Below, piece after piece: positions 3,309 to 40,129 of a stretch of DNA of 64,000 nucleotides; positions within the stretch are counted from its first letter, which is position 1, and each line of letters begins with the position of its first letter. Made by a program: the position numbers and the translations under genes. Below the pieces are notes generated by a model. That model was not told where the DNA came from, did no database searches, and was given only the letters and a program-made list of their open reading frames with translations. The stretch spans positions 137,479-201,478 of the forward strand of contig JAAOMT010000790.1 of assembly GCA_016748015.1 (NCBI GenBank), read 5' to 3'. Source of the stretch: Geosiphon pyriformis uo1 (taxonomy: Eukaryota; Fungi; Glomeromycota).

Positions 3309-3354
3309 ATTTAATCCAACAAAAAACCAGCACCAATAGCAACCATTCAAAACA

Positions 3355-8109: not shown

Positions 8110-8122
8110 AAAGAGGGGATAA

Positions 8123-12699: not shown

Positions 12700-15600
12700 T
12701 TTTTTAATTTTGAAAAGAAGTTTAAGTGTTTATAATTTTTAAATTATATGAGTAAAAAAAAGTTTTAACCAATATCAGACTTATTATCTTGATTAACATT
12801 GCTTGTAAAATTTTATTTAAGATTTTTTTAAACAAAATTTCTTTAACTTATAACAAATTTGGTATTTTTTATGATAACAATTTTTCTGTGTTAAAAAGTA
12901 TTATTATTTAGTTTTTTATTTTTGTAATAAGCTTAATTATAAAAAATATATTAAAAAAAATTATAAAGTTTAATTGGTTTTATAAAACATATATAAAGTA
13001 TATAATTTTATTAGATAATATTACAGTTTGGTTAAAATAAAAATATATAAGTGGTTTATAAAATTTTTTGGTAATATTTACAATAACAAAATTAATTAAA
13101 TTATGACAAATTTTAGATTGACTAATAAATACCAAGTACATGATAATTTAAATTAATGTAAAATTTTCTTTTCTTTGTTTTAAAAAATTTTTTATGATTC
13201 TTTTTTGTGTAAAATAAAAAGACTTAAAAGTTTGTTTAATTATTAAATTGATATTAAATTTGTTGTTAAGACTGGCAGAATTAAAAATTAAGCTAAATTA
13301 ACTGTTTTTTTAACAGCTAGTACATTTGTTAATAATACAATCTAAATTAATAATAATATGATTATAATTTAATATATTTTAAATATTGTTAGTAAGTTCT
13401 TTATAATTAATAATATTTTAATTAACAGTAAAAAAAATGATTTGTTATTTTATAAATATATAAGTTAAAAATTTTTTATTGTCAATATGTAAAATGTTAA
13501 TTTTTATTGCAAAAAAAAAAAAAAATTTTATAGATATCTAGATATTTTTTTGTTATTAAAGAATCTAAATTTAGTTTAACTAAAACTTATTTAGATATTC
13601 GGTTTTTTTTAATATGGTTTTAAAAAAAATTATCTTAAACAAACAATTTTTTTATTTAATTTTGGCTGTATTACAAATTATAGTTAATTATAAAACTTAA
13701 TTCAGTTTTGTTTCTAAAAGTATATATAATAAATAAAATATGTTAATTAAAAAAAATCTAAGGGTTGTTATTGGAGATTTTTGGTTTTTTTTTTTAATAT
13801 TGTTGTTGTTGTTTTATTGTTAATTTTTAATTATTAAAAGTAATTAAATCTTCAATAATTAAATTTATTTTTAAATTGTTTCCTATAATTTAAATTGCTG
13901 AGTTTATAAATAGAATAGCCAATTTTATACTAATTGTTTATATAGTTACTTTGTAATACAAATCAACTTTTTTTAGAAAATACTTGTTTAAAAGCTTATT
14001 CAAAATGTATAGTTACTTTGCTAAAAAAGTTAATTCTTTTACAAAAATTTTGTTTATAAACTATTTTAATAGATATAATAATAAAAGAAAAGAAAAATAA
14101 AAAAAATGTAAAAAAAAAAGATTTTATTAAGGAAATTATCTGCTGTTTAAGCCTAAAATTACTAACAAATTACTGAAATTAATAGTTAGTTAATTTTAAA
14201 ATATTAATTAAAATTTGGGAAAATTTTAAGTAAAATTAATTATAAATTTGTTGTTTTTAATATAGTTTTTGTTGAAGTGATTTGTATAAATATTTTAAGA
14301 AAAATATTTTTAATAAAGATAAATTCTAACTAAAATATATTTTTTTAAAAAAAAAGCTCTTTTTTTATACAATTTGTTATAATACTAGTTTGTAAACTTG
14401 TATTTTTATTTTTATTATTAGTTTGCCAAATTAAAGATATATTTTAGCAAAGTATAAGTTATTTCTACAAATTATTGAATATTTTAGTAAATTATTAATT
14501 ATTTCAGTAAATTTTTACAAATTTTGGTAAATTCTTAAATGTTATATAATTTATGGTATTGTATAATCTGATTATTACAATTTGTGTATTATATAAATTG
14601 AGTTTATTAATTGGATGATAATTTTGGTAATTTAACTAAATAATATGTAATAATAATTAATAATAATAATAAATATTAATTAATAATAAGAATTATAAAA
14701 GTAATTTTATGTTAAATAATAACTCAAATTTTTACTGATAATAAAATAAAAATTGGCTTACCAAAGAATTTTCTTAATAAAATTTTATATTACCTATTTT
14801 TATATAGTTTAAAGTCATTTAAACAATTGTAAAGAAAATAAGGTGGCTTTATATTGTTTTTTTCAAATATTAATAGTATTTTTAGTTGTCTATTTAATTA
14901 TAAATCTTTGGATTTGCAAGTATTAAACTAGTTTTTGTTATTTAAATAGAAAAACCAGTCCAAAATTATTAAAAAAACGTAATTACTATGTAATAATATA
15001 AAAAAACATAAATAACACAAAATAATACAAAATAATACAAAATATTATAAAATAACTCAAAATAATACAAGATAACACAATAATACAAAATAGCACAGAA
15101 TAACTAATAAGAATATAGGATAACTAGTTATAATAAAAAAAAATAAAACAATAGTTAAAATAATAATTAATAATTAATAATAACAAGCAATAAAAAGAAA
15201 TTTTGTAAAACTAGAAAATATATATAAAAGCAAATAGTTTTAACAAATAAAAAAAACAGATTGGATAAAAATCAGTTTAATATTTTTATATTATTCTTAA
15301 TCTTAAAAACTTCTTTCTTTTTTTCATTTTTTATATTTTAATTTTACCAAATAAAATATTATTGTTTAATTTACAAGTCTATAATTCTAATACTCTAATT
15401 GTCAAAATTTGATTAATTGTTTTTGTTTATTTTTATTTCAAATCAGATAAAATTAGCATAATTACTTTTAAAACTTTAATAATTTAAACTAATTGCTCTT
15501 AATTATAGCAATTAACAGAATACTAATTTTTTGTTTTTTTTGTAAAATAACAACATTAAAAATCAACTGCTTAGAAATAAACTTTGTAATAATCTAGTAA

Positions 15601-17787
15601 AAAAAAGCTTTCTCTAAGTTTAAATATTCACTTTATTTTATTAGCTTATCAGAAAAACAAAAAAACAATATTAGATCTTAGTAACTATACTTATTAATTC
15701 AGAAAAAAATACAATTATAACAATACAATTAAAAAAACAACATTTTTGTGTCTTATAACAAAAATACTTAATAAGTAAAACTTTAGACAGAAAAATTTTC
15801 AGAAATTAATAACTAATTTTATTATCAAAACTAATTTATTTAAACTTAATTTGTTCTCAATATTAAATTATAAATACTAATATTATAAACATACTTAATT
15901 AAATTTATTTATAATATTTTTTAACCATTTTTTACATTTTCTGATAAGATTAAAAATCAGTTTAGTGAACAATTTTTTGGCTGAAATTGTGAAATTTTTT
16001 TTGAACTGTAATATTTTCTTAATTAACAATTTGCTCTTAGCATTTTATTTCTTTATTGGTATTTTAATGTTTTTTATTTTGAAACAAACAGTTTTTTACA
16101 ATATTTTTTGCTCTTTTAAGAGATTTGGTATTGTTTTTACTAAACAGTTTTACATTAAAAAAGATTTGAATTTTAATTAAAAAAGTTTTTATTACTAAAA
16201 AAAACTTAATTTTAGAGATCTTGTTTTTGTTTAGTTTAATTTAATATTTGAGTATTTGTATAATAAAGTTTTTTGTTGTAGTATTTTTGTTTTTTAATGG
16301 TGGTTTTTATTTCTTAAATATGCTTAATTTTTATTTTTTTTTAATGATAAAAAAAGTTTTACTGATAATATTTTGGATATTATTAATGTTTATACTAATA
16401 AATTTCCAAAAAATTTGGAAATATTTGATGTAAAAAATATCACAATTCTATTTTTTAATATAGATTTGGTTATTAGTATTAAAATAGGTGGTTTGGTCTT
16501 ATTTACTTTAATGAAACTACTGATAATTACATTAACTTTGAAATAAATTTTCAATTTCTGTTTAGTTATAATATATTTTAATAGTTAAGCTGCTTTGAAT
16601 GCTTATTTATCAGAGCTAAACTTAATAATATCAGATTTTTGTAATTATTATTAACTTAAAAAATATCAAGTTTTAAACTCTATTAAGAATAAAATTATTA
16701 ATATTACTTGATTCAAAGTTAAAGATTATTTGGATGTTTTTGGTAATAAGAAAACCAATAAGTTTGTTTATACTGTATCTAACTCAAGTTTGGTGTTTTC
16801 TATTAAGATTCATAAAAAATATAGATGAATAGATAATAATACAGTTTTAAAGAATACTTAGTATTTTGTTTGTAATATTTTTAGATCTATTTATTATGTT
16901 TATTAAAAGATTAATTTTGGTTTTAATATGTTTACTGAAAATTTAATAAAAAATATTGACTAAACTAAAACTTTATTAATATAGCATTCTGACTTGTATA
17001 TAATTTTTAAATTTATAAATAAACTTACAGCTAATTTTTGGTTTTATTTTATGAAAGCTTTCTATTGTTGTTTAAAAGCATTTATATAACAGAAATTATT
17101 CTAATTTTTTATGTTTTTATTGTAAAAATGTCGAATTTTCTGATTATTTTTTGTGTACAAAATAAATTAGACTATTCAAAAAATTGCTTAGATTATGTAT
17201 AACTTTTTGGGTATTTTTGTTTGGCTTGAACTTATTATTATTTTGTGTTTTATAAATGCTTTTAGTATATATTTTTAATAATATAATTTATACTATTTTA
17301 TGTAAAAATATGGTTTTTAAATTATAATATTTAGAAGCTTTATCTGTTTTGGTTGCTTCAAGATTATAATTGAGTGTATTATAAATTTTGTGCATAATAT
17401 TGGAATAGTTTACTATAATAGTATTTAATTGATTAAATCTAAGTATAAAATACTTTAGGAAAAAAAAATTGATTATTTGTAATAAGTTTGCAATTTTTGT
17501 GGTATATAGTTTGTTTTATTTACTTTTTAATAAAGTCATAAAACTATTTAAGATTATAAAAGTATTTAACATTAATTTTGGTTTATGTAAATTGTGTTTA
17601 TTTTTTTATAATATAAATTGTAATATTTTTATTAAGATAGATTTATAATGTTGCTTTGGTTGGCCTAAATAACTAATTATATGTAAAAAAAATGCATAAT
17701 TTGTATTTAGTTTAGATTATTTAGTTTAATATATAATATTAGATAGCATTTGAACTTTATTCATTAAAAAATTAATAAAAAAAAAAA
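12700..17787 (+). mobile_element. Heavily AT-decayed LINE (copy C: RT to RNaseH to 3' UTR/poly(A)) with two internal insertions (~13765-14745, ~14940-15935)
   Basis: Residual collinear similarity, e.g. 12766-12900 vs 34611-34745, 14750-14830 vs 35625-35700, and 3' UTR 17645-17787 vs 11075-11212; left boundary approximate. Confidence 0.72.
15010..15125. repeat. Degenerate 10-bp tandem repeat (AATAATACAA)n
   Basis: About ten degenerate units read directly. Confidence 0.7.
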
Positions 17788-17989
17788 GCAAAAATTTTTT
17801 TCTCTAATTTTATAATTATAATTAAAACAAAGAATAAAAAAGTTTTTAAATATTATTTTTTTTGTAATAACTAATAAAGTTTAATAATAAAAATTGTTTT
17901 TAACAATTTTTAACCTATTTTTTTATCTTTAATTAATGGTTTTTTTTCAGTTAAAATGTTTTTTAAAAAACATACTTAAGTAAGTTTTA

Positions 17990-19500
17990 GTGTTGTTTTT
18001 ATTTTTTTTAAAAGTCTAAAAGTTTTTAATAATAAGTTAATTAATAAACTGATTTTTTTTGCTTTTATTATTAATATTATTATGATTTTTTTACAAATGA
18101 CCAAAAAAATCAAAAATTCCAAAAAACAGCAATAATTGTTTATATCTATTATTATTATACTAAACTTTTTTATAGTTTTAAATAAAATTTTAGAAAATTT
18201 TTTTTTAATAATAACCAGTTTTTTTTTAATATAAAAAATAATAATATTAGCATATTTTTTAAGACAAGTTAAGATTAATCACTAATTGTATTGCCAATTG
18301 TAATGTTTTTTGGCAAATTATTGCTGGAAAACAACTTATTAAGTTATTTAATTTTAAAGATTGAACTAATTAAATAGAAATTAATTTAACTTTTTTTTGG
18401 TTTTTTAATATTGTCTTTAATAATATTTAAAAAACAATTTTTAGTTGTTAAAAATTTTTAAAATAAGTAATCTCTATTTTGGTGTTTAATGTTATATTTA
18501 AAATTAAATTGACTTTAGTTAATTTTTTGTTTTATTTATTATCTGGTTTTATTAAATTTAAATTTGGTTTAAAAAATAATATTAAGTTGTTTTATATAGA
18601 TTTTACTTTAAGTCTTTCTTAATTACTGTTACCAAAATTGTTGTTAGTAATTTTTTTTAATTATACTTAAAATTGCAAAATCTTTTATAGTAATTTCTGT
18701 TTTTTTTCTTTTTCTGTTGTATTATATAATATTCTTCTTAATATATTTTTTGATAATATTAAAAATATTCTTGGTGTTTTTAATATTTTTACTTTAGTTA
18801 AATTAAAATCTACTAGTTTGTAATAATATATTGTTATTAATTTTAAAAACTTTTTTTCTGATATTGTTTTTAATACTAGTTAAAAAAATTTTTTTTTGCT
18901 TAACTAAAAAGAAATTTTTAGTTTAAGAAACACTTTTAAAACCAAATTGGTTAATTTTTTTTTAGTTGTACTGTCTTTAAAATCAATAATTTGATTTTCA
19001 AATTGGTAATTATATTTGTTTTATTTCTTATTTTTTTAATTTTTATTATTATTAATGTTTTGCTATTATAATATTTAATTCTTATAAATTTTTAAACCTT
19101 AGTATTATAAAAACTAGTATTTTACACAAATATTATATTTAATAAAAAATTTTTAAATATTATTAATATTATAAATATTAAAGTTTAGATTATTTGTTTG
19201 CTAATTGCATAGTATTATAATCTTTTTTTTTTTAAATTATTAATTAATTTTGTTATTGACTTTAGATTTTTTGTATTATTTTTTGTTGATAAAAAATTTT
19301 ATGCTAAAGTTTTTGTCTTTTTGGCTTTTTTGCTTGTTATTTTTTTGGTTATTTTTGTTGTTAATTCTGTTATTAAATCTATATTGAATTTTTTGAAATC
19401 TCAAATTTTAAGTTTAGCTGTTTTAATTAAATTAGTTATTAAACTAATTAACTTATTAATTAAATTAATTTAAACACTTTTTTTTCTATGTATATAAAAC
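17990..19500 (+). pseudogene. Very AT-decayed, T-rich ORF-like relic, probably ORF1 of another LINE subfamily
   Basis: T-rich + strand like the other LINEs; residual protein-like stretch MTKKIKNSKKQQ at ~18098; not alignable with confidence within the window. Confidence 0.3.
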
Positions 19501-19991
19501 TTAAAAATATTATTATAATTGTTTAAAATAAGATATTTGTTTTTAATAAAGCTTTAAACAAAAGTTAATATTAAGATAATTAAAGTTAAAATTAAATATA
19601 GTATTAAAACTAATTTAATAAATAATATTAATTATATATTAAACAAAAATATTTATTCATAGTTAATAACTGTTTAAAAACATTAATTTTTTAAAATTAA
19701 TCTGAATCTAGATAAAATTACTAAATAATTAAGTAAATTAGTTGTAAATAGTATTTTATTATTATTATACATAAAATATTTTTTTAAAATATATATTTTT
19801 TTAAATTTAATATAGTTTAGTCTAAATTAGATTTATATTTAATTACATATAAAAAATTTTTAATTAATATTTATTTTAAGTTTGTCATATTATATTAAGT
19901 TATATTTAAGTTTATATATTAAATAAAAAATACATAATAATTTAATTTCTTTACAATTAATTTTTCTAAATATAAAAATAATATAATATAA

Positions 19992-20740
19992 AAAACTTCT
20001 TTCTCTCTTATCTCCAAAAATCCTTAAAAAGCGCATTTTCTAAAAAAGAAGTTTTCTATTTTTTCTTGTTAGTTTTTTCAACATTTCTTTAAATAACAAC
20101 CCTTTTGTTATGGATTTAAAGGCTGCTTCAGGTGGTGATATGTCAAAAAAAAAGACACCCAAAGGAGCTTTCTATGGTTCTGCTGGTGGTTTTTTTGCTC
20201 AAAAGAAAAAAATGGTTTTTGGGAACATTAAACACTCTGGTAATAAGAAGGATATCTCTTTAAGTAAATCTGGATCTGATAATAGTGTGTATTCTGATGT
20301 GGATAGTCTGTTTGGTAATAATGAAGATGTTGGCATGGCTGGTGTAAATGGTGAGTCTCTTTTGGGTTTGGCTGCAACCACTTCCAAGGCAAAATGTATT
20401 AATACTGGTGCTGCTTTTGGTTTCCCATTTGGTTCTCCCAACTTTGACATGGACAATAATAAAGAAGTGTTTCTTCCTTCTTGTTTTTCTATCTTTCTAG
20501 ATAAGAAGTGGGTTGATTCCAAAATTATCAAAACTCAGGTGGAGGTTTCAGTTAGGCAATCTTTTGCTTTGGACATTAATTTCTCAGCTGTAGAAGGGAA
20601 ATCAATGATGGCAAAAACCCAAATTATTAGAAAAATTTTTTCAACTGTCAATGGTTTTGGGAGGGCCATTACTCCTTTAAAATTTAAAGGAATCATCTGA
20701 TCGACATTTACTTTAGAAAAAAGCATGGAAATGGCCGCAT
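19992..20740 (+). mobile_element. LINE X, 5' head (5' UTR and ORF1 N-terminus, ATG 20110)
   Basis: MDLKAASGGDMSKKK...II*STFTLEKSMEMAA; collinear with copy Z; ends abruptly at CGCAT 20736-20740. Confidence 0.88.
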
Positions 20741-21506
20741 CCCCAGCCTTTTTAAAAGCCTGTGCCAAGCTCGATTCAGACGTAAATGTTGCTTTGATGA
20801 TCCCAGCAAATTTTGAGGGGGTAGAGGCCCCCCCAAAACCATTGATTCCTAAAAATAATTTCCTGACTGCAGAAAGTTTCTCTTGAGAAGATTTACCAGT
20901 CACTTTTTTCAATCCAATATTCAGAGCAAATGACTTACAAACAGGGACATTAACCAGATTTCTCAAAGGAGTAGGAAGTTCTAAATAACCACATGACAGA
21001 ACATCACCATTATCATCATTGCCCAAAAAATTAATTTTGCCCAGAGATTTACCCAAACTTTGCTTAGTAACTACCTTGGGCCCTTTGAGTGTTTGGTTAA
21101 TGTTTCTTCTTTCCAAAAGATCACTTTCTCTATAATCTACACTAGTTTCCTCAATCAAAAAATCCTTTTCTATGTTCACACTGTCAGATTCAGTGGTATT
21201 CCCAGCCTCAGACTCCCAAGAACCACCAACCACTTTATCAGACACAACCATTTTTTGAGCAGCACCATTCTTCAGAACACCACCCTTCCTTTTTTTCCTA
21301 GAAGCAATGTCTTTACTAACAGTATCAGCACTAAAGTCTTTGGCAGATTTCTTCATCACAACAACACTGGAACCAATAATGGCCTTGTAATCAAGCAGGA
21401 AAGGTTTGGATTTATCGTACTGAATTGTAGAAAACTTCTTTTCAAAAAACTTTTGACTCTTTTTTAGGAATTTGGGACAAAGGAGAGAAAGAAGTTTTTG
21501 TTGTAA
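20736..21506 (-). mobile_element. LINE Y, 5' head (5' UTR and ORF1 N-terminus, ATG 21359), now inverted
   Basis: MMKKSAKDFS...GINGFGGASTPSKFAGIIKATFTSESSLAQAFKKAGDA; flanked by the rc of the 23-bp TSD found at 38452-38474. Confidence 0.88.
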
Positions 21507-23255
21507 ATATTTATAATAAATAAATATTTAAAAATTATTTAATAAAATTAAAGTATTAAATATATTTAATTTAATATTATAAGTTTTTTGTTAAATAAAA
21601 TATTATAACTTTAATGTCTTATATTAAAAATTTTTAATTCAATCTAAAAGTTTTATCAATTTATTTTTGTGTTTTTATTTGTAAAATTTTATTTATAAAT
21701 TAAGTATAATAATAGTTAATTATAATAATAATAATTTTATTTTATGTTATTAATCATAATTAATAAAGTTTAATTTTGTTTTTTTACTTTTTTGATAAAT
21801 TAATAATCTTGTTTTTTCTAATATTTTATTTTATTTTATTTTGCTATTAAACTTTTTTTACCAAATTATTATAATATTAAAACTTTTATTAACTTAATAA
21901 TTTTATTTTTTATTATTATTATTTAATTAAAACAAAATAATACAATTTTAGTTTTAAAAAGTTTTTTACAAAATATTAATAAAAATACAAATGTTTTTTA
22001 CTTTGTAAACTTTAAATAAATTTTATTTTTTTTTATTTTTTTTAATTATATAATTTAAAAAAGTTTTTACTGTTTTTGATAATAATAAAACAGTTTTAAA
22101 ATTAAGTTTTTTTAAAAAAAAATTAAATTTAATATTTTAAATTTGTTTTAATACTTGTTATAAATATTAAAGATAATTTAAAAAAATTAACAAAATTTTA
22201 AAAAATTTAAAAAATAATTGTTTTTTTTAATTATTTTATATTATTAAATATATGTATATATACAAATAATTTAATTAAATTTTGTAATTTTTATTATTTT
22301 TTTACAATAAAATTTTTTTTAAACACAATATATCTAAACTTAAAATACTTTTTTAAATATTTTTTTCAATTTAATTAAATATTATTAATTTTTTTATTTA
22401 ATTAGTTTTTTAAAAAATCTTTTTTAATTAAGCTTTATAAAAAAAACTTATATTTATAAATATACAACTGAAATTCATAATTATAAAATATAAAACTTAA
22501 AAACAAATATTTTTAATGCAATTAGCTAATTTTAAAATTTATTTTTGGTCTTTATACAAAAAAAACTTATATATTATATAAATTTTTAAAATATTATAAA
22601 AATATCTAAAAATTAAAATAAATTTTTTTAAATAATAACAATAATATTTATTTTAGACTTACTAATCTGAATTAAACTAAATAATTATAAATTATTGGTT
22701 TTTAATAAATAAAAAATAATTTTATTAATTTTAATTTTAATTAAAACAAATTTTTTTTTAATAATAATTAAATTTATTTTAAATATTACTTATTATTTTA
22801 TTGTTTAATATTTATTGTAAAATATAATTTTGGAAAAATAATTTTTTTTTCTAAATTAACTTTTTATTTTATTATTATATGTTTTTAAATTAAGATATTT
22901 GTTAATTTTTTATTTTAATTTTAGTTAATAATATTAAAAAAAACCAAATTTAATATAATAATAATATTTTAAAAAATAATAAAATTAGAAAAAAATAAAA
23001 CCAATAATTATTATTAATAGTATTATAATAATAAAAAAGTTAGTAAAAAAGTTGTTCATGATTTTATTAATAATATTTTTATATAAAAGTCAAAAAATAA
23101 AAATAAAAATATTAAAAACTTTAATAATAAAACAGTTTTTTTTAAACAATTTTTATTTAGATATAGTTTAATTAATATTAATGAATTTAATAATATAAAA
23201 CTAATTTTAAAAAAATAAAAAAGTTTGTAATAATTAATAATCTTAAAAAATTAAA

Positions 23256-25295
23256 GGCCAATCTACCTAAAGATTTTCCAAATAAGGCTTTGTATCATCT
23301 GGAATTATACAGTTTAAGAATTTTTGACTGAGAATATATTGGCTGGCTTGGTTGTGTTTGTGAATACTGGTGGAATCTTCAGTAAGCTATTCAGGCACAG
23401 AGTCATGGAGTTGCAGCCCACTAGCTGGATGCCCCAGCATCCTCTAAAAGTTCTGATTAATTTGCTGATTAATCCCACAAATTGTTTTTTGGCTGGTGCG
23501 ACACATGCTCTCAAGTTATATAACCTTTCATTGGGTGGTGATCTGCCTGATGTTTTTCAGGCCAAGAATAGTATCGCAGTTTTGGACATATTTGGTTTAG
23601 AGTCTTATTTGTATGTGGCAAAGTCTCTTAAAAGATACAGCATAATGTTTGTTCATTAGTTTTTGGACCACCAAGGTGCATGTTTTAAGTGGAACACTTT
23701 TTGCAGGTGGAAGAAGCTGGACTCTAGAGGCCCAGTTCCTGTCTGATTTGTCTTGTTGGTTGAATTTATCAATGGGGGCAGTTTGTCGAATTGTGTGGTA
23801 TTGTCTTATTGTTCAGCTCTTGCTAACTTTCCTTATGACTTCAGTTATGTTAATGAGCATTTGCTGAATTCTGATTTGAGTTCTGTGACCATCTATACAG
23901 ATAGTTCCGTCAAAGGTTTGGGTTCATTGAGTGCTCATGGTAGTGCTGCCGCCTACTTTCTGGATACAAACATTAGCATCGGGGTCAAGATGGATGGAAG
24001 CTACAAGTTATTGTACTTGCTTTAAAGTGTGTGTCCGCTTCTCGGTCTGTTAATTTGTTTACTGACAGCCAGGCTTTGCTGGACTTGTGCAAATCTGGTG
24101 GTGGTGTATTTAGTCCTGATTTTCATGACAAATGCTGGATTGAGAAGGAACATATTTGCTGTGTTATCTCTAAAAAAAGCTTGTTGGTTATTTGGAACAA
24201 AGTCAAGGGTCATTCTGGTGTTGTTGAAAACAAATGTGCCAATTTTTATGTTGATGCTGCTGTTGCTTCTAAGTTCTTTTTGCCTCTTGTGGTTCCTTAT
24301 CGCTTTCTCAAGGTTGAAGACAGGCCTGTCTCTGGAAATGCTTGTCATGTTGCCAAAAAATTGTTTAATGCTGTTCATTCTGTTGGTTGGGAAGCCAAAT
24401 GTGTTGGTAGCTTCATTAGTGTGGGTTTCTGTGACCGTTTTGATAAGGCCAAAACCTTTTGTGTTTGGCATCCTGATGGCAAGATCAAAATCTGGCTACA
24501 CCAGTAGTGTGTCAGCAACACTTTGGTCATATCTTATAAAGGCACTCCACCACTGATTACCAGTGGCCAAAAGGAAAAGATTGTACAATTTAAGATATCC
24601 AAATATTGCCTGCATTCAGTGTGGGTTGGTGAAAGACTCTGATTACATGTTTTCCTGCACTCATGATGCTAATGTTCAGGAAATTTTGTTGTCTGATGCT
24701 TCTATGGAGTGGAATGTAGTGCTGGGAATTTCTGCTGATAAAAATGTGATTGCTAAGTCACTGCATGAGACTGGGTTTTCCATCAACCTATTCACAGCGC
24801 TGGCTAAAGGTTTTGTGTTGAAAGACTGGGTGGCTGACACAGTAAGCTGTTTGGGTGCTGGTTTTGGTAGGGGTATGTTGGTTGTTGATTTCATTCATTG
24901 TTTTGCTGAAAGTTACAGGTCAGCCATTTGGATACCAACAGTTAAGTTGAGATCTTATTATGAAAAGCATAACCTTCTGCCACAAGATGGCTCCTCTTTT
25001 TTTTCAGTGTCTGGTCTGTCTTCTTTGTGGTCTGCTGGGTCAATTCGAGATTTTGGTTTCAGGTTGGGTGTTTACATATGCTTCAGGTTGCACCTGTGCC
25101 TTACAAAATCAGACTTTGGTTTTTTGAGTAGTTTTCCTGTAGCAGAAATTCTGGATGTGTAGTGCTGCCTTGGTTGGTCTAAGTAACTAGTTATGTGTAG
25201 AAAAAGCATGAACCATGCTTAATTTAGATTCTGTGTATTCTATGTACTTAGATAGTGGTTGGACTGCACTCATAAAATCTTTAATAAAAAAAAAA
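23256..25295 (+). mobile_element. 5'-truncated LINE copy D (Y subfamily): RNaseH, C-terminal CCHC, 3' UTR, poly(A)
   Basis: Closely similar to 35625-37627 (IYTDSS, FTDSQA, KVKGHSG, CIQCG..DSDYMFSC); probable TSD AAAAAATTAAA at 23245-23255 and 25290-25300. Confidence 0.9.
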
Positions 25296-25699
25296 TTAAA
25301 TATATATTTAAATCAGATAATAATTATTAAAGAGTTTTTTAAAAAAATAATTGTCTTAATTTTATTTAAGTTTAACAAAATAGTATTAATTTAATTACAA
25401 TTAATTAAACTATACTAAATTAAATCAAGCTAAATTATTAGCTTTTAAATAATTTGTATTAAAAAATAAAAACTTTATTTATGTTAATAATTAAAATATT
25501 TAAGAATAAAAAAATAAAAATAAACTATATAATTTATTTTGTTAATAAATATTATTATTTATAATTTTGGAAATTTTTTAAAAAAATAAGCAAAAAACTT
25601 GTATTATTAATTGCATATTTATTATTATTAATAAAATAAAATATATTATTATTTGTTTTAAAGCTAAAAACAATTTAAAAAAAACTTATTATATTATAT

Positions 25700-28600
25700 A
25701 ATATTAGCTTTTAATAAGTGAAGCCCAATCACTATCTAGTACAAAAAGCCAAACTAAGTGGCTTACACTAGATGCAACTCATACACTCCCTACATATAGC
25801 TAGCCACTTAGACCAGACAAGGCAATACTATATACCTAAAACAACACAAGGGTTACAATTTAAACCTGTAAAAAAAGGACAAAGTTGTCAATGGCCAAAA
25901 TTAACAGCAAAAGATTCGATGATACCAAGTATCTTAATCATTCCCTCTGACAGAACAGATCTGATGCAACATGACAAACCTGAGACCAAACTATTATCTA
26001 TGTTTACATCTTACCAGCCAAATTTTAAAGCGATGTAACTTAGCCAACTGCTTAACAAACCCAACAACCATGCAAAAAGCCTCCTTTTTCTCATCAAAAA
26101 TATTAACAGCTTTCTCACACCAGTCTCTAAGCATAAACCTTTTGTACAAAACTGAATACAAGCCAACATCCAAAGAGCACTGACTAAAAGTCTGCAACAT
26201 AGCAGAAGAAGACAGATCATTGACACCCAACAAAGAAGTTCAAGATGCAAAAGCTTTAACCAAAACCTCCCCCCAAATCCCAGCATTCAATGCACAAGTA
26301 AAAACATGATCAAGCAGTTCCACTTTACTACACAACAAACACAACATGCCAGGATATCTCCTATTATACAACCTCTTTCTAACTGCCACAGGCAGCCATT
26401 GGTGCACAGCTTTCATTAGATATGTATGCAAACCAGAAGATTCCTGACTAGTAAAGCCAGCAAACATATAAAAGTCAGGATGCCAAATCTTAGCCATAGT
26501 ACTCCAGTCCACACATCCAACCATATTACTCAGAACAACAACCTGATCAGGACCAGCCTTTCAATGAGCACAGTAAATAAACTGAAACACATCTCTAATA
26601 AAATGATGGGTATTGTCAAACACGGCCATAGCTTCAGTCACCAGAAAACATTCACACACTCCTATAAGCAAAGAGAACTTAGAACATGTAGCATGACTAG
26701 TAGCAGCATCAGTCACCACATTACCAGTGACTCCAGAATAGCTCTTGACTTTCACCCATCTCACAGCAAGATTTTTATCTCTAATTAAATTAAAAATGTG
26801 ATGTCTCTCTATTTAGCATGGAACACAAAAGTCAGGCATGGCCAAGAACATTTCGGATACACATGCATCAATAGCAGCCTGGCTGTTAAGATGCAATACT
26901 ACAGTACAAGAGGATGGGATGCACTTCAATGCTAGAGCAACTGCCTGGAACTCAGATAAAGTAGAAAACAATAGACCCTGAATCTTAACACCAACACTCA
27001 GATTTACAAAAAAAAAATACGCAGCAGTGCCACCAGTCACACCAGCAGTCTCAACATCTCTTAATAAACTGTCTGTATAAATGTCAAATGAACTGGACCA
27101 AATTTTATGCAAACTACTTTGAATATTAGAAAACTTTACAGAATTCAGAACATTTAGCTCAAGTAGAAGACCACCCTCAGTACAAACAGTTAACAAAGAG
27201 TCCATATTCATCAAAAACTTTAAAACAGTCACAAACTAGAAAGGAACAGGGCCTCTTAGATCCAACCTCTTCTAATGATGAAAAGTCTTCCAATCCATTA
27301 AGTAACTCTTTCTATTAAACAGTCTGTTATCAAAGGCAACACCAAAACATTTCAATGAATGAACCGAGCTAAAGTAAAGAGCATTTTTCAACACAAAAAA
27401 TATAAGAAACACACCAGAATTATAAAAAGCACTTGGCAAATTGTTAGCTAAAGACAGTTCACTATCCAAAAAAATCTTAACCACACTAACCAGAAAATTG
27501 TTTATAAGACTAACACGTAACTTAACAGAAAACTGCAAGGGATTCAATGGAGCCCAATCCAGAACTTGCAAATCCAAAAATTTATGATTGAATAAATGCC
27601 CAAAAATGCCAAGAGCATTGAAAAATGAAACCACAGTAGCTGATTTACATTTTAACTGCAATTGCTGAAAAGATTTCAAGCCATATAACAAAAAGTGATG
27701 TAATGCTTTAACTGGAAAATCATGTGACAAATGTGCTTTAGACCTAAAACCTTTCTAAATCATAGCATCTCACTTGTGGCAAACCCTTAATAAGACAAAA
27801 CTAAACTGGATTCTGTAGCTAACAATGGGCTGCAGAACAGTCACAACCAAATAGAAGAACTGCTTGTTAATAATAACCTTCCTGAGCATCACATTAACAA
27901 AAAAGCACACATCTGAATGAACTTTGATTACACTTGACTTAAACAACCCTTCAGTAGACAGAAAAATACCCAAGTACCTATGAGCTTTACTCTTTTTAGC
28001 TATTAAAATTGGCTGACCACTTATGCTTAAAGATGCCACTCTAACACCTTAATTAATAGAAATGGCCACAGTCTTTTTATTGTTAATAGAAATGTCATTG
28101 ATTGCAAAAAACTTACTAGCAATATTCAGAGCATACTGCATTGATGTTTGATAGTTACTAACTCAAATTGTATTGTCCACAAATGCACCTACAGCAAAAA
28201 AGGAGAACATCCTGCCACTAATTTCAATTCTACCAGTTCTAGCTACAAACTTAGTGTCAATTTGATAACCACACAAATGCTTATGCCTCTTAACTTTGCG
28301 TAAAAGAGAGTCATAAAAGATTCTCTAAAGAAGAGGCAAAAAGACCTCACCTTGATCCAAACCATTCCAAACTCTGTATCTACCAGTAAGACTGAAGTCT
28401 GTCATAACCCTATTTATCCTATTACTATGTATACCACCAAAAAATCTGATGAACCTATCACACATTTTGATTTAACATAAGCTAGTCTTCAAATAATATC
28501 ACCCCACAGAATCATAAGTCTTGTGTATGTTCTGAAAAACCAACCAAAGTTCCCAATCTTTTTCCAGAGCATTTTCAACTGAACCAATTGTAAACACTAG

Positions 28601-31600
28601 AGATTGGATAGATGTACTTTTTAAAACAGAAAAGTTATCACCCTGAAGAACACCAAACTTGCTGTATACAGAAAAAATCCTATCAGAAAGAATCTTAGAG
28701 AGAATTTTCCTAGCAGTCTCAATCAAAGCTATAGGCTGTGTATTTGTAAGAACTCTATCCCAATTATATGATTTAGGGATTATTGAGACCCAAGCTCTCC
28801 TTCACAAAACAGGAACACCACTAACCAACAAACATGCATTTAATAATCTCAAGAAATATCCCAACATTCTATTGCTACCACACTTCCATAGTTCATTAGG
28901 GATATCAGACAAGCCAGCTGCTTTACCATCAGGCAGATCATTGACAACTAAGAGCAACTCATTCGAACTGATGACACCCATCACATTAGAAAAAGCACAA
29001 TCTTGCACATAATTCAATGGAGCATACTAATAAGCCCAGAGATCAGGCACCACCAAAAACACCACCTGTTTCCTAATCCAATCCTCTATAATTTTATTAA
29101 CATTGAGCTTTACTTCCTTAGGTTTCAAAATTAATTCATTATTCATAGAACTACTTTGTGAGAAGGCCAATCCAAAACACTTCTAATCATGCTGCCTTTG
29201 TCAGAACAGAAATTTTTCATGCACTTCAATATTGCCAGTTTAATAGAAGCCTTCTCAGCCACTTTTGATTCATACATTTTAGATCTCCTGTATTCTTTAC
29301 AAACCAATAACAAATGTCCAAGAACTACTTTACTCTTTCCATCTAAGCCAATCAAGTTAGCAAAGACACAAGCCTTGGTGCTATCCAAAGTTGACCATGT
29401 TTTCACAAGGCAATCAACTTCAGACAAATCACCTGAAACAAACTTTTTAACAATCTTGGCAACCAACAATTTCAAACCAAAAAACTTAGAAGAAAATTTA
29501 TTTCTAGAACAATGAAACTCATTAAACCACTGTCTTGAAAATGTCTTGTCAGCTAATTCCACTATCACTCTTTTTAAAATTGCCCACATAGCATTCACAT
29601 TACTGTGAGTTTCAGCACCAAAAAATTTATTAGCAACCACCAAAAGCTTGGCAGAAAGACAATCCCTAAAACCAGTCTATTTGGGGCCATTAGCATCTTT
29701 AATTTTGAATTTTCAACAATCTTTGTTAGCCTGTTTGCGCAAGCTATTCAACCAAATATCTAGAAGTCTACCTAAGCCAATCAAAACCAAAACAGCACTA
29801 TGATCAGTGTCAAAAAAACCAGACACAGAGCAGACCTAATGACCAACAATGGCAAAAGAAAGATTTCTGCTGACAAAGATAAAATCAATTGTCTTTTCAA
29901 CTCCCCATAAATTGCTCTATGTAAGGGTCTTTTCCATATAATAATTGGTAAATAAATTGACCAAACCCAGACCCAAACAAAACTTGAAGGTTGCACTCCT
30001 TCCAGACCTATTCTTATTAAAATCTCTACCTAGAACCACAAAAGTGCTAGAATTAACAGCTTCTGCAATCAAAGAGTTCACCTCCAAAGCTTGACCAAAT
30101 CTGGTCTCAAAAGAGGCACCAGTGTACAAACCCAGAATTGTGACTGAAAGCTTGTCTTTAAACAAAAGTCGAACTGAAATAATCCTGCCAGAAATCTCTT
30201 TTATCTTAGACACATGGCAAGCCAATGAATTGTTAATAATTATAGCAATCCCAGCATTGAAAAAACCTTTATCCAAGCCAGATATGAAGACATGTACACT
30301 CTTAAACTTATTAGCAATTCAAGGCTTAATACTGGACTTCAATTTAGTTTTTGTAACAAAAAACACCATATTGCCAGAATTCGCATGCCAATACACAACA
30401 TCTATTTGCTTTGCAGGAACATTGATGTCATGAACATTGCACACAGCAAACTTCCAAACCAAACCACTCATTGGGAGAGGGAAGAAACCAAGAACCCCAA
30501 GCCAATACACAACTGATCTAACTTCACCAAAACAGAACCAATTGAGGCTTCAAGAGCCACCAACTTGGACTCCAGACAGTCCATCTTGGTAGTTAAGATT
30601 TTTGAGCTATTAAAGCCCAGAGCTGAAACAATAGAGGGAGTTGCAGGCACCACCATTGAACCATTCAAAACCATATTCAAATCTGAATCCACATTGACAA
30701 CTATTGGGACAACTGAATGGCCAAAAGAGGGAGTGGAGACCAAAGACACCAATTCCATGCTGCTGAGTTTGTGCACAATGCCAAAAACTTAGTCAGTTAA
30801 CAGCTCCAAAGATTGTTCTAAAAAGGCCAAATAAGCATCCAAAGACGAATTGCCAACCAAGACAGAAGGAAAACCATCATTCAAATCTGAAGTGCCAGAC
30901 AAAGGGGAACCAGAACCAGAAGCAAAGTGAAAACCATCAGAGGAACCAGCAAGTGAGACCACCGGGACCTAAGATTTACCACCAAAGGCAGTAGGGCAGG
31001 ATATTGGAACATATTTTTTCTCATACAACTTAGCCAACTGAAGATGACATTCATCAGACACAACTTTTTTAAATGTTTTTGAAGGCTTAGAAGAGGACAC
31101 AACAGATGCATCACATTCCAAAGCAGAGTGACCAAACTTCCCATATTTTTTATACTGAACCAGATCCATCCTTGCCCAAAAAAGTTTAATTCCACTAAGA
31201 ATTGGTTCCATGTGAAAGGCAGATTCCAGATCATTATCAGATTCAAAACCAACTACAACACAGCGAATCCTATTGCCAGTTTCTAGAGATTTGTTTATGA
31301 TGCAAGTTTTCTCACCAGCTCTTTTCAGAAGAGTCCCAAGATTATGTGCTGTTGTTCTTACTGGCAAAGTAAACAAAAGTGCTCTGAACTGATCTCTTAA
31401 TGCCCAAATTTCATGATCTTCTACTGCTTTGACTATGTACACAGAATTTTTACCAATTAGGAATAACTACTTAAAGGCTAACAAATTAGCTTGGTCCAAT
31501 TCAGTAAACTCTACTACAGCTTTTTGCCATATTCCAATCAGTTGAATTTTAATTGACTTAATTTTCCCAAATTCGGATACTACAGCAACAATCATATCTT

Positions 31601-31710
31601 TAGATGTGTTCATAGGAAGTTCTTTAATCACTACAGTCCAATCTGACCTCATTCCTTGTTTCTTAAGATTGCTGTTTATGTCAATTTTTTTTTCTCTGGC
31701 CAATAATGCG
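25700..31710 (-). mobile_element. LINE X body (rest of ORF1; ORF2 APE endonuclease-RT-RNaseH-CCHC; 3' UTR), now inverted
   Basis: MSGLVWKFAVCNV, VVLGRDFN, GKAAGLSDIPNE, QNIHKTYDSVG, AFVDNTI, RYLGIFLS, IYTDS, KVKSYSG, CLLCSKVELLDHVFTC; many stops. Confidence 0.92.
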
Positions 31711-32876
31711 AAAATCTTGGTTAACACCAATCTCAAGAAACCAATTGGTCATTCAGATCGGGCTGTGGTGGTAAAAGAAATTCCAGTTGGAACATCAGTG
31801 GAGACTGTGCATACTGTGCTTTCTGAATTTGGTTCTGTTGTGTCGATCAAAATGCAATTAGTGGGGCTATGGCAAAAGGCTGTGGTTGAATTTGCCCAAT
31901 TGGATCAGGCTGATTTGGTTGCAGCTAGATGGTCCATCTTGATTGGGAAGAATGCCGTGAAAGTAGCTAAGGCTAATTTGGACAAGAAATCATGAGACAC
32001 AAGAGATCAGCATAGGGCTTTGCTCTACACACTGCCGATGGGCACTAATGTACATGATATCTGGGATTTTATTGGTTCTATGGGTGGGAAAACATGAGTC
32101 ATCAATCGACATCCTGTTACATATGCCTAAACCAGATGTGCTATTGTCTGTTTTGACTCTATGGCTTTGATTAATGCAATTATGGGAACCACACCTGTCT
32201 TGAAGGGTGCCAATCTGCATTGGGCTTACATGAGTTCTGCCAAGTGTGCTAAGTATGGGAATTTGGGTCATATATCTCTGGGTTGTTCTGTGGGTGGGAA
32301 ACCTTCCCCTGGTAGATTAGCTCATAGGATATTGTCTGAAGATGATAAGAACAGGCTGGCTTCTATTTATGTAAGGCACTCTGCTCTAATATTCCATCCT
32401 GTGTCTTTTGGTGGCATTTCATGGGCCAATGTTGTTGGTGGGTCTTCTTTCCCTTTTCTCCTTGTACATAGTAATTTAGCTTCTTCTGGTTCCTTTTTGG
32501 GGATGAAACCTCCTCCGTTGGTGTCTGTAGAATTAAATAATAGGTTTGCTGCTCTTGAGTGTAGTTTTGCCAGCCTTGCAGAACATGTGGACAAGTTGGC
32601 TAAGAGGTTGGACTCACCTAGGCCAATGGTTTCTCAGCCTAGCCCTAGATGTCAGCTATTGGTGCCCTCTTCATCACAGAATCAAGGGGCGGATATAGTG
32701 ATGAGTAAGGGTTCAGGTGTGGCCACTGGTGGTGAAGCTATTGTGAGAGTGGCAGTTTTTGATCTTTCAGTTGTCTCTAAAATGGAGGAAACTTTGCGCA
32801 ATCTTTCAATCACAGTTATGGGTCTCTTGGCCAAAATTGACAATGCTGGTTTGGTTTTCAATGTTCATCTTTCTCA

Positions 32877-35800
32877 ATAATAGAGCTGGTTTGGAAAATT
32901 GCAACATGTAATGTTCATGGTATCAATGTCTCTGCCAAGCAGAAAGATGTTGTTTGTTGGCACAGTAATTCTGGAAATATGGTTTCTATTATTATGGAAA
33001 CAAAATTGAGGTCTAATATTAGACCTTGGATTATGAACAAGTTCAATGGAGTGAGGATATTTTCTTCTGGTTTGGACAATGGGTTTTTTAGTGCTGGAGT
33101 GATGATCATTATGAACAATTTCCTTGCTCGTCATGTTTCTAAGATTGAGAAGATACTTGGTTGTTTTCTTTCCGTTCGGCTTCTTTTTAAGAACAAATTG
33201 TCAGTTGTAATTTTGGGCCTGTATACAGGTGCTTCTGCCGAGACTAGATTTGGCCAAGCTTGTGAAATTAACTCTTTTATTGCCAAGGCTGCTAATTCTT
33301 CCACATTCATGGTTCTGAGTGGTGACTTCAATGAGAACAGATCTAGAAAGAATGCTAGTCTTAAGTTTTGCTCAGATTTGGGGTTGGTCAACTCCTTTGG
33401 TGGACATCCTCTGGCCAAAGCTTCCACTTGGGGCAATTCCCGGGGTGTTATGAAGATTATCGACTATATTTTTGTGAGCAAGAGTTTGTCATCTGCTTTG
33501 GCTGGTCATAAAATCTCTTCTGTTTCTGATTTCTTTGACACTAATCATAATGCTGTTCTGGTTTCTGTTGGTTTGAGTGGTCTCTTGGATTCCTGTCTTA
33601 ATAGTGAGTGCAAACAGGCCAATAAGAATAAGTGGAAATTCAAGATCAAGGATGCAGATGCTAATAAGTGGTTACACTTTAGGGAATGTTCTTTAGACAG
33701 GTTCTTGGGAAACATAGTTTTATTCAATGATGCAAAAGTTAATGGAAATTTGAATGCCATGTGGAGGATCCTTAAGGATGTGGTTTTTTACTCAGCAGAT
33801 AAGATGTTTTCTAAACATTGGTTTAGTGAGTTTGATTGTTCGAAAAATAAGCTATCTTTGAAGTTTTTCAAGTTGGAGTTGTTGGTGGCCAAGTTGATGA
33901 AATGTTTGAGCTTGGGTCAGATATCGAATGCTGCTTGCTTCCTCAAGGTGTGGTCTAATCTTGATAGTAAGGAGGCATCCAAAGCATGCACAATGTTTGA
34001 TGATAATGTGAGCAAGGTGAGCATTCTTCAACACCTATCAAGGGTAAAAAAATTGTACCATAAGTCTAAATACTATAAGTCTAGGGTGGCCAGAGATATT
34101 TCAATTAGGAGAGCAATAGACAAATGAATGGAAAACTTTAGCTCCAATAAAGGACTTATGATCAAGAGCATTTTGGATCGGCCATTCAAAAAAGTTGTGC
34201 TGAACCATCTGATATTGGACAATGAGTTGATTTTGGAGCCCAAGGAAGTTAAATCTGCTGTTGATAACATCATGGAGGGATGGATGAGGAAAAGAGTTGC
34301 TCCTGTTTTTCTGCCTGTTCATTGGTCTAATCAATATGCCCTCTTGGACTATATCAGTAATGATGCATTCTCAAAGGTTATGAATGTGATTAAATCGGAT
34401 GAGTTTCTCTTAGTGGTCAAAGAACTGTCTGATGGGAAAGCTGCTGGCATGTCTGGTATTCCTAATAAGCTTTGGAAGCATGGAGATACTCAGGTTCTGG
34501 GTGGTCTGCTTGACATTCTTAATGTGTGCTTAAAGTTAGGAGCAGTTTTTTTACAGTAAAAGCAAGCCTGAGTTTCCATGATATCAAAGCCCTATGATTG
34601 GGAAGGGACACTTACTAATACCAGGCCAATAGCTTTGATTAAGACAGCCAGAAAGATACTGTCTAAGATTTTTTTTGACAGAATATCTCTGGCTTGTAGT
34701 GTTTCTGATGTTTTTCGTGGGGACAATTTTTTGGTTTTAAAAAGTACATCTACTCAAACTCCTATCTTCACCATTGGTTCTATCATTGAAAATGCACTTG
34801 AGAAGAACAGGAAGCTTTGGCTAATGCTTCAGGATATGCAGAAAGCTTATGACTCAGTTGGGTGGCCCCATCTGCAAAATAGTTTAACTAGGATCAAAAT
34901 GTGCTCCCGTTTTATTGAACTTTTTGGAAATATACACAATAATCGGTCCAATTGGATAATGACAGACTTTGGTCTAACTGATGGATATGCTATTCATGAT
35001 GGGTTGGATCAAGGAAAAGTTTTTTCACCATTGTTGTGGAGGATCTTTTATGACCCTCTGTTTTGTGAAGTCAAAAGGCATGAACAATTGTACGGCTATA
35101 GGTTGAATTCTAAATTTTTTACCAAGACAGGTAAAGCTGACTCTAAGGGCAGCAAAACCTCCTTTTTTTGCAGCTAGTGTCTTTGTGGATGACACTATTT
35201 GGATTGGAAATTGTCTGGCAGCCATACAATGCATTTTGAACATTGTGAGTGAATTTTTTTCAATTAATAATATTGTTATCAACACAGACAAGACAGTTGC
35301 CATTTCTATCAATTGAGGGGCCAGGGAGGTTTCTTTGTCAATCAGTGGCTCTAGAATTTCTATTGCCAAGAAGGGTGTGTCTTACTGATACTTGGAGATT
35401 TTTTTTTCTACAGATGGCCTATTTAAGCCAAGTTTGGCCAAAGCTTATTCAGATATTAGGTTCTTTTCAAATGTTGTGCTAAGGAAGGCTGTTACTGAGA
35501 AGCAATTTTTGTATTTGGTGTCTGCTGTTTTGCAACTCATAATTGGTTACAGACTTCAGTTTAGTTGTATTTCTAAGAGTGTTTGTGAAAAGTGGGACAA
35601 AATATTGAGAAAAGAGTTAAAGCTTAAGACTAATCTACCCAAGAATTTTCCAAACGAGGCTTTGTATCATCCAGAATTATACAGTTTAAGAACTTTTGAA
35701 CAGGTGCTGGCTGAGAATATATTGGCTGGCTTGGTTGTGTTTTCGAATGCTGGTGGAATCCTTGGTAAACTATTTAAGCACAGAGCCATGGAGTTGCAGG

Positions 35801-37555
35801 CCATTAGCTGGATGCCCCAGCACCCTCTAAGAGTTCTGATCAATTTGTTGATTAATCCCACAAATTGTTTTTTGGCTGGTGCGACACGTGTTCTCAAGTT
35901 GTACAACCTCTTATTGGGTGGTAATCTGCCTGATGTTTTTCAGGCCAAGAATAGTATTGCAGTTTTAGACGTGCTTGGTTTGGAGTCTTATTTGTGTATG
36001 GCAAAATCTCTTAAGAGGTATGGCATAGTGTTCATTCATTAGCTTTTGGACTACCAAGGTGCTTGTTTTGAGTAGAACACTTTTTGCAAATGGAAGAAGC
36101 TGGACCTTAGAGGCCTGGTTCCTGTTTGGTTCGTCTTGTTGGTTGAATTTATTAAAGAAGGCAGTTTGTTGAATCGTGTGGTGTTGTCTCATTGTTCAGC
36201 TCTCGCTGACTCTCCTTATGACTTTGGTTATGTTAATAAGCATCTGCTGAATTCTGATTTGGGTTCTATGACTGTCTATACAGATGGTTCCGTCAAAAGT
36301 TTGGGTTTGTTGGATGCTTGTGATGGTGCTGCCGCCTACTTTCTGGATGCTAACATTAGCATTGGGGTCAGGGTGGATGGGTTGTTATCCTCAACTTTGG
36401 TGGAGCTGCAAGCCATTGTACTAGCTTTAGAGTGTGTGCCCGCTTCTCGGTCTGTTGTTTTGTTTATTGACAGTCAGGCCTTACTGGACTTGTGCGAATC
36501 TGGCGGTGGTGTGTTTAGTTCTGATTTTCATGACAAATGCTGGATTGAGAAAGAATATATTTGCTGTGTTATCTCTAGAAAAGACTTGTCGGTTATGTGG
36601 AACAAAGTCAAGGGTCATTCTGGTGTTGTTGGGAATGAACGTGCCAATTTCTATGCTGATACCACTGTTGCCTCTAGGTTTTTTCTGCCCCTTGTGGTTC
36701 TTTATCGCTTTCTAAGAGTTGAGGACAAGCCTGTCTCCAGAAATGCTTGTCATGTTGCCAAAAAATTGTTTAACACTATTCACTCTGTTGGTTGGGAGGC
36801 CAAATGTGTTGGTAGCTTTGTTAAAATGAGTCTCTGTGACCATTTTGATAAGGCCAATACCTTTTGTGTTTGGCATCCTGATAGCAAGATCAAATCTGGC
36901 TACACCAGTAGTGCATCAGCGACACTTCAGTCATATTTTATGAAAGCATTCCACTACTGCTTACCAGTGGCCAAAAGAAAAAAATTGTATGATCTGAAAT
37001 ATCCAATAATTGTATGCATTCGGTGTGGATTGGTGAAGGACTCCAATCACATGTTTTCCTGCACTCATAATGCCAATGTTCAGGAAACTTTGTTGTCAGA
37101 CACTTCTATGGAGTGGAATGCAGTGTTAAGAATTGCTGCCGATAGGAATGTGATTGCTAATTTGCTGCATGAGGCTGGGTCTTCCATCAACCTATTCACA
37201 GCACTGGCTAAAGGTTTTGTGTTGAAAGGCTGGGTGGCTGACACGGTAAGCCATTTGGGTACTGGTTTTGGTGAGAGTGCGTTGGTTGTCAATTTCGTTC
37301 GTTATTTTGCTAAGAGTCACAGATCAGCTATTTGGATACCAACAGCTAAGTTGAGATCCTATTATGAAAAGCATAACCTTCTACCACGAGACAGCTCCTT
37401 TCTTTTGTCAGTGTCTGGTCTGTCTTCCTTGTGGTCTGCTGGGTCAATCTGAGATTTTGGTTTCAGGTTGGGTGTTCAGATTGCACCCGTGCCTTACAAA
37501 ATCAGACTTTGGTTTCTTAAGTGGTTTTCCTGTAGTGGAAGTTCTGGATACATAG
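32877..37555 (+). pseudogene. LINE Y ORF2: APE endonuclease, reverse transcriptase, RNase H, CCHC finger (disrupted by stops and frameshifts)
   Basis: KIATCNV, IMETKL, SGDFN, IDYIF, TNHNAV; RPIALI, QDMQKAYDSV, DGLDQG..SPLLW, FVDD; VYTDGS, ELQAI, DSQA, KVKGHSG..GNERA; CIRCG..DSNHMFSC. Confidence 0.92.
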
Positions 37556-38391
37556 CGCTGTCTTGGTTGGCCCAAGTGGCTAGTCACATGTAGAAAAAGC
37601 ATGAGCCACGCTTAATTTAGATTCTGTNNNNNNNNNNNNNNNNNNNNGCAAGATCAAATCTGGCTACACCAGTAGTGCATCAGCGACACTTCAGTCATAT
37701 TTTATGAAAGCATTCCACTACTGCTTACCAGTGGCCAAAAGAAAAAAATTGTATGATCTGAAATATCCAATAATTGTATGCATTCGGTGTGGATTGGTGA
37801 AGGACTCCAATCACATGTTTTCCTGCACTCATAATGCCAATGTTCAGGAAACTTTGTTGTCAGACACTTCTATGGAGTGGAATGCAGTGTTAAGAATTGC
37901 TGCCGATAGGAATGTGATTGCTAATTTGCTGCATGAGGCTGGGTCTTCCATCAACCTATTCACAGCACTGGCTAAAGGTTTTGTGTTGAAAGGCTGGGTG
38001 GCTGACACGGTAAGCCATTTGGGTACTGGTTTTGGTGAGAGTGCGTTGGTTGTCAATTTCGTTCGTTATTTTGCTAAGAGTCACAGATCAGCTATTTGGA
38101 TACCAACAGCTAAGTTGAGATCCTATTATGAAAAGCATAACCTTCTACCACGAGACAGCTCCTTTCTTTTGTCAGTGTCTGGTCTGTCTTCCTTGTGGTC
38201 TGCTGGGTCAATCTGAGATTTTGGTTTCAGGTTGGGTGTTCAGATTGCACCCGTGCCTTACAAAATCAGACTTTGGTTTCTTAAGTGGTTTTCCTGTAGT
38301 GGAAGTTCTGGATACATAGCGCTGTCTTGGTTGGCCCAAGTGGCTAGTCACATGTAGAAAAAGCATGAGCCACGCTTAATTTAGATTCTGT
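36884..38391. other. Assembly gap (20 N, 37628-37647) flanked by identical 744-bp copies
   Basis: 36884-37627 and 37648-38391 read as identical and abut the N run. Confidence 0.9.
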
Positions 38392-39987: not shown

Positions 39988-40129
39988 TAAATAATATAAA
40001 TTTATTTAAAAATAATATTTAATTATTGGCATTTTTAATTTAGATATTACTGATCAGGGATAAATAAAAATAAAAATTTAGGTCACTGATCTAACTTTTT
40101 GGTTCTTACCTACTATTCTATTACAAACC

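Follow-up and report, generated by a model that had tools for sequence, protein, structure and literature searches.

A clean 11-kb inversion splits two directly oriented LINEs in the assembled genome of Geosiphon pyriformis

We analysed a stretch of 64,000 nucleotides from the genome assembly of the fungus Geosiphon pyriformis (contig JAAOMT010000790.1, positions 137,479 to 201,478; called the window below, with all coordinates counted from its first letter). Two long interspersed nuclear elements (LINEs) in this window, X and Y, are each divided within their first open reading frame (ORF1), and their 5′ parts (heads) now lie apart from the remainders of the elements (bodies). A clean inversion of about 11 kb splitting the two LINEs, as proposed in an earlier sequence-only reading, was confirmed in the assembled sequence. 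Judged from the sequence, one inversion of 20741–31705 explains both head–body junctions and both pairs of target-site duplications (TSDs), and when this flip is undone in silico X and Y lie in direct orientation. The exchange falls within 5 bp of inverted identity, which probably served as microhomology in joining, and the most plausible origin is a single two-break event.

The analysed stretch is part of an assembly of 128.3 Mb in 792 contigs, against which all genome-wide comparisons were made; published figures for the G. pyriformis genome are 129 Mb, 795 scaffolds, 64% repeats and 29% G+C (PMC9453076 Table 1). The layout was derived from a self-BLAST of the window and from comparison with other genomic copies. 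For the latter, we sampled 76 other copies of the X and Y families, taken as the best matches to 200–690 nt beside the break site on either side and fetched with their flanks. As references for X and Y we took naturally intact copies (L002, L094 and others) in place of a rejoined or consensus element.

Two LINEs divided by one inversion

The locus is a nest of dead retrotransposons, in which the transposable elements (TEs) have 35–40% G+C, compared to 13–20% in the extremely AT-rich surroundings. Its parts are as follows.

8876–10649, minus strand: copy Z, the 5′ part of an old X-type LINE, unbroken over the X break site
19981–19991: X 5′ TSD, 11 bp, low-complexity
19992–20735, plus strand: X head, 5′ untranslated region (UTR) and N-terminal part of ORF1; its sense continues to 20740, including the 5-mer
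20591–20890, plus strand: imperfect inverted repeat of the two facing heads, created by the inversion
20736–20740: junction A, crossover 5-mer CGCAT, containing a CpG
20741–21506, minus strand: Y head, 5′ UTR and N-terminal part of ORF1, open up to the junction; 88–92% identity to the heads of intact Y copies L002–L007
21507–21529, minus strand: Y 5′ TSD, 23 bp, today in inverted orientation to the Y 3′ TSD
21530–25688: former X–Y spacer, AT-rich DNA and LINE tail W
23254–25310, now plus strand: W, a 5′-truncated Y-like LINE tail; 23254–25234 matches 35626–37627 at 85%
25689–25699, minus strand: X 3′ TSD
25700–31705, minus strand: X body, remaining ORF1 (from the RRM-like part onward) and ORF2, decayed; 84–88% identity to other X-copy bodies
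31706–31710: junction B, crossover 5-mer ATGCG
31711–38451, plus strand: Y body, RRM-like part of ORF1, then ORF2, frameshifted
38452–38474, plus strand: Y 3′ TSD, 23 bp

The X head (19992–20740, plus strand) resumes in the X body on the minus strand (31705 down to 25700), and the Y head (21506 down to 20741, minus strand) resumes in the Y body (31711–38451, plus strand). Both the self-BLAST and the genomic copies thereby reproduced what the sequence-only reading had described, namely LINE heads facing each other at 20740 and LINE bodies diverging at 31706. Head and body are contiguous in 73 of the 76 other copies; in either family, the probe ends are separated by exactly 5 nt. Since the same 5 nt are present here, the event neither lost nor gained bases, and no extra or duplicated bases were seen at the breakpoints relative to the intact copies among these 76. 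This rules out a staggered-break inversion that leaves inverted duplications at its ends.

An unbroken counterpart of X is found in the window itself. Copy Z is colinear with the X body over 8876–9614 (30967–31706) and with the X head and its upstream flank over 9628–10649 (20726 down to 19683), so that an X-type element without a break spans what is split here, in agreement with the earlier description of Z. For Y, the corresponding evidence comes from elsewhere in the genome, where Y-family copies match the reverse complement of 20741–21600 up to 5 nt before the homologue of 31711. The TSDs had also been read correctly: the 23-bp Y duplication at 38452–38474 is the exact reverse complement of 21507–21529, its partners now being inverted and 17 kb apart, and 19981–19991 is the exact reverse complement of 25689–25699 for X, although this 11-bp match is of low complexity. 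These pairs also rule out an L1-type twin-priming 5′ inversion, because two families are involved, each with its own TSD pair and with exchanged partners.

Both elements are about 6.75 kb long, and their bodies are 66.5% identical over 2.7 kb. Pfam searches found a reverse transcriptase in Y (RVT_1, E = 1.3e-13, 34578–35177) and RNase_H (E = 1.8e-10), a domain that follows the reverse transcriptase in LINEs of the Tad1/I-type clades. Weaker signals in Y, which is a decayed copy, are an APE-type endonuclease match that does not reach Pfam's cut-off (Exo_endo_phos, E = 0.049) and a weak RRM match beginning 19 codons past the break. On these grounds we assign both X and Y to LINEs with an ORF1 and an ORF2. 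Consistently, the 3′ end of Y is an A run followed by the 23-bp TSD, as is typical of LINEs, and 5′-truncated members of the families exist (L018, L063, L084). Both elements are decayed by frameshifts and stops. The proposal that re-inversion rebuilds in-frame ORF1s therefore stands only in part: the restored junctions are colinear, but the X ORF at 20110–20700 closes at a stop (20698–20700) 12 codons upstream of the break, and the Y ORF1 meets a stop 95 codons downstream of it. The ORFs that cross the two junctions in the present arrangement encode 274 aa and 129 aa.

The crossover lies within a 5-bp inverted identity

The 5-mers at the two breakpoints, CGCAT in X (20736–20740) and ATGCG in Y (31706–31710), are reverse complements of each other, as had been noted from the sequence. 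The flip therefore leaves intact the 5-bp inverted repeat at the two ends of the flipped segment. The identity does not extend further: only 3 of 7 and 2 of 7 positions match in the flanks of the 5-mers. When 400,000 pairs of breaks were placed at random in the X and Y bodies, an inverted identity of at least 5 bp was found in 0.63% of them (P = 0.0063), so that base pairing probably took part in joining.

At this position, other X-family copies carry CACAT, TGCAT or CGTAT, and other Y-family copies ATGCA or ATGTG. These variants derive by CpG decay from the same ancestral 5-mers, which shows that each 5-mer belongs to the original sequence of its element. X and Y at this locus belong to the minority of copies that have kept the CpG of the 5-mer, which most others have lost.

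CpG is generally depleted in the two LINEs (19992–38451), with an observed/expected ratio of 0.08–0.22 compared to about 1.1 for GpC, a pattern that fits methylation-driven decay. The sequence-only reading had pointed to CpGs surviving around the junction (20702–20783), and this holds: junction A contains 4 CpGs in 84 nt, against a mean of 0.45, and only 0.4% of the 84-nt windows in these elements reach 4.

The two breaks occupy nearly homologous positions

Naturally intact copies of X and Y align through this region without gaps, and the 5-mer of X precedes that of Y by 17 columns, which agrees with the earlier estimate of about six codons. Conservation between X and Y is comparatively high around the breaks, with a mean column identity of 76%. 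Given an element length of about 6.75 kb, the chance of an offset of at most 17 nt is about 35/6750 = 0.5%. Restricting breaks to CpGs, of which the two elements contain 19 and 53, hardly raises this value by a rough estimate. We regard the 17-nt coincidence as suggestive, not compelling. We attribute the closeness of the breaks to chance, perhaps favoured by a locally exposed or fragile stretch that both elements have where the RRM part of ORF1 begins.

Origin of the inversion

The account that we consider probable is a single two-break inversion of a direct LINE pair, rejoined through complementary 5-nt ends. X and Y would have inserted as full-length, directly oriented elements about 4 kb apart in AT-rich DNA, each creating its own TSD. 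Later, X and Y would have been broken in a single event and their four ends joined in the opposite sense, so that 10,965–10,975 bp were flipped. The exchange would lie inside the CGCAT/ATGCG identity, as would be expected if the breaks were staggered and left complementary 5-nt overhangs; staggered cuts with overhangs can be obtained from a type II topoisomerase or a nuclease. Annealing-dependent end joining, a template switch at the inverted 5-mer or a recombination-like exchange would fit the pattern as well. We infer the type of break and the joining pathway from this pattern, and routes that give a conservative result at both junctions share the same sequence outcome, so that the sequence does not tell them apart.

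Several points weigh against this account. Ordinary microhomology-mediated end joining usually deletes, and special ends or another pathway are required for an outcome that is conservative throughout; neither the flank loss nor the templated insertion that is usual at end-joining junctions is found here. A one-off event also leaves the 17-nt offset unexplained. Finally, 3 of the 76 sampled copies have a discontinuity within 25 nt of the site, where about 0.4 would be expected from roughly 15 discontinuities over about 1870 nt. In our view, the event belongs to an ordinary kind, apart from a single coincidence that this account does not explain.

That coincidence is the starting point of an alternative in which diverged homology (homeology) guided the inversion. 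Here, a broken X end would have paired transiently with the diverged Y at the matching position. The D-loop so formed would have offered its displaced same-sense strand, and annealing of the 3′ end of X to this strand through the 5 nt of inverted microhomology would give the inverted joining near the homologous position. The 17-nt, gap-free spacing of the breaks, their position in a comparatively conserved region and the significance of the microhomology all speak for such pairing, and the microhomology at the X-body end would lie 12–17 nt inside the stretch that it displaces. However, this is a single case, an X/Y identity of about 66% is far below the normal tolerance of homologous pairing, and the sequence duplication predicted by copying-based models is absent in the comparison with the 76 copies. 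Moreover, TE-mediated inversions in human all involve elements in opposite orientation (15/15; PMC9675761), and we know of no precedent for direct pairs. The earlier suggestion of homology-guided pairing followed by microhomology joining is thus borne out as far as the inversion, the 5-bp identity and the near-homologous breaks are concerned, but the guidance itself is drawn from one coincidence (p ~0.005), and we consider it unlikely.

Slightly less probable still is that the flip exists only in the assembly, produced by chimeric reads or molecules or by a mis-oriented piece. The assembly does contain 20-N gaps with perfect flanking duplicates, one of them in the 3′ part of Y (37628–37647) and others in L068. 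The gap in Y lies between perfect 744-bp copies (36884–37627 = 37648–38391), and this duplicate is an assembly artefact that inflates the Y 3′ part. The two junctions nevertheless correspond reciprocally, base for base, their sequence is unique whatever useful word length is chosen, the nearest N is at least 5.9 kb from either of them, and a chimeric read would be expected to yield one junction, not a matched pair. At about 66% identity, X and Y are also too diverged for a repeat-induced misjoin to be expected.

Two independent breaks could also have been mis-joined at a spot that is fragile or preferentially cleaved in both families, at the start of the RRM part of ORF1. Methylated CpGs with base-excision repair, a site hypersensitive to topoisomerase II or nuclease, or a preferred target of an integrase have been considered as causes. 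The CpG cluster at junction A (top 0.4% of 84-nt windows) and the retention of a CpG in both 5-mers would be in line with this, as would the three discontinuities close to the site. L015 (C607, ~853981) and L068 (C627, ~330130) are Y-family copies with Gypsy long terminal repeat (LTR) insertions 14–19 nt downstream of the Y break; their insertion points are within about 5 nt of each other, and the LTR termini read TGTTAC...GTAACA. The third, L054 (C647, ~511444), is an X-family copy with an 80-nt internal deletion that ends 24 nt upstream of the X break. We rejected the idea that the two Gypsy junctions are the two sides of one nested insertion, as they lie mid-contig on different contigs and share no TSD. 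The crowding involves events of differing nature and is a hint only: the enrichment comes from two to three events, and the part of the assembly that holds L068 is ridden with gaps, with 20-N gaps all around this copy. Taken over all 76 copies, discontinuities other than strand switches are scattered, at −489, −329, −309, −148, −104 to −24, +14, +19, +394, +448, +790 and +1037 from the site.

Lack of recurrence argues against a shared site. None of the 76 sampled copies switches strand there, so that among these copies the proposed clustering of strand-switch breakpoints at this ORF1 position is not seen, and the 73 unbroken copies include none that is inverted. We also queried the 128-Mb genome with the two chimeric junctions, which gave 1629 and 1233 candidates; among the best 40 scored for each, junctions A and B were matched only by themselves, and all others stop at the junction. 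In addition, the X and Y breaks are at different positions, and their flanks share nothing past the 5-mer. A common cleavage or recombination site, or a site-specific system, as raised by the sequence-only reading, is accordingly not supported, and we give the fragile spot a lower probability than either of the preceding alternatives.

A programmed segment inverted by a tyrosine or serine recombinase with a 5-bp overlap would share the conservative, reciprocal exchange within a short inverted core, but it is highly improbable, as similar arms around the two cores are absent, both junctions are unique in the genome, the content is dead TE sequence only, no recombinase ORF is present (all ORFs of at least 150 aa in 19.9–38.5 kb lie inside the mapped LINE segments, and ten ORFs scanned with Pfam matched only RVT_1 and RNase H), and a second contig with either orientation was not found among the best 40 of the 1629 and 1233 candidates. 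Inversion by non-allelic homologous recombination was ruled out, given that the partners are direct rather than inverted and, at 66% identity, have only 5 bp in common where the crossover lies.

Comparison with known inversions

We know of no pathway by which repeats in direct orientation would yield inversions at matching positions. Inversions between short inverted repeats, and those arising by template switching, have bacterial and organellar examples and also occur as short template-switch mutations. They resemble the present case in that a short inverted flank remains unchanged while the interior is flipped with no loss or gain. However, the repeat has only 5 bp here, and its arms are 11 kb apart, far past the usual reach of a switch within one fork.

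The closest known kind is a two-break inversion joined via short microhomology. End-joined inversions of this type in human and tumour genomes likewise combine two breaks, inverted rejoining and a junctional identity of a few bases, without long homology or a recombinase. The inversion described here differs from them in being perfectly conservative at both junctions and in having its breaks 17 nt apart in aligned, related elements.

Inversions mediated by recombination between retrotransposons are similar in size, on the kilobase scale, and in having both breakpoints in TEs of the same class (PMC2603318; PMC9675761). In human, the TEs involved are in opposite orientation and mostly provide long homology (PMC9675761, PMC2603318). 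Such recombination needs opposite elements and a crossover in long homology, whereas X and Y are direct, 66% identical and share 5 bp.

Surroundings of the inversion

Copy Z is cut at 8876 by the end of a Gypsy LTR (TGTAACA at 8873). Copies of Gypsy-type LTR elements occupy 424–8885, with 424–3056 about 72% identical to 6250–8885. LTR ends are found at 3290, 5355 (reverse) and 8873, and a sequence resembling a primer-binding site, TTTGGTGC, starts at 3291.

The segments 10000–20000 and 38500–40000 have 13–20% G+C and show faint similarity to LINE pieces (for example, Z is 66–70% identical to X). From its sequence, this background looks like very old, AT-decayed repeats. An Rfam scan over the whole window gave zero matches.

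Consequences of the inversion

As a side effect, the flip would have severed X and Y from their 5′ ends and formed a hairpin from the two LINE heads. The region around junction A matches itself on the opposite strand at 65%, and 20591–20890 is predicted to fold as an imperfect hairpin with an RNA minimum free energy of −101.5 kcal/mol (z = −6.9). Its arms measure about 75–90 bp at about 65–78% identity, and the loop consists of the 5-mer and the 17-nt offset. According to this prediction, the head-to-head junction is a possible candidate source of hairpin RNA if it is transcribed from the 5′ end of X or Y.

A comparable arrangement is Mu killer of maize, an inverted TE duplication that gives hairpin RNA. 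In both, a rearrangement has brought the 5′ regions of TEs to face each other downstream of a TE promoter, with a strongly folding hairpin predicted here. They differ in that the arms here come from two families and pair imperfectly, and a role in silencing is putative. The idea of a repeat-inactivating rearrangement describes the effect, as both elements would have lost their 5′ ends, rather than a purpose. Both copies are decayed, and the stop in X precedes the break.

We consider it doubtful, though worth stating, that the locus is one instance of a recurrent process in Geosiphon, in which conservative flips at 5–6-bp inverted identities would, between related repeats in direct orientation, be guided to near-homologous positions by transient pairing of the diverged copies, and would convert neighbouring LINEs into head-to-head hairpin loci, separated from their promoters, that could feed RNA silencing. 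Independently of this, the locus is a well-documented clean two-break inversion, in which the broken LINEs and their TSDs record the event base by base, and it can serve as a marker and for testing the quality of assemblies in an unculturable fungus. If near-homologous breaks prove to be a rule, they would represent a new route to the inactivation of repeats and to hairpin-RNA loci.

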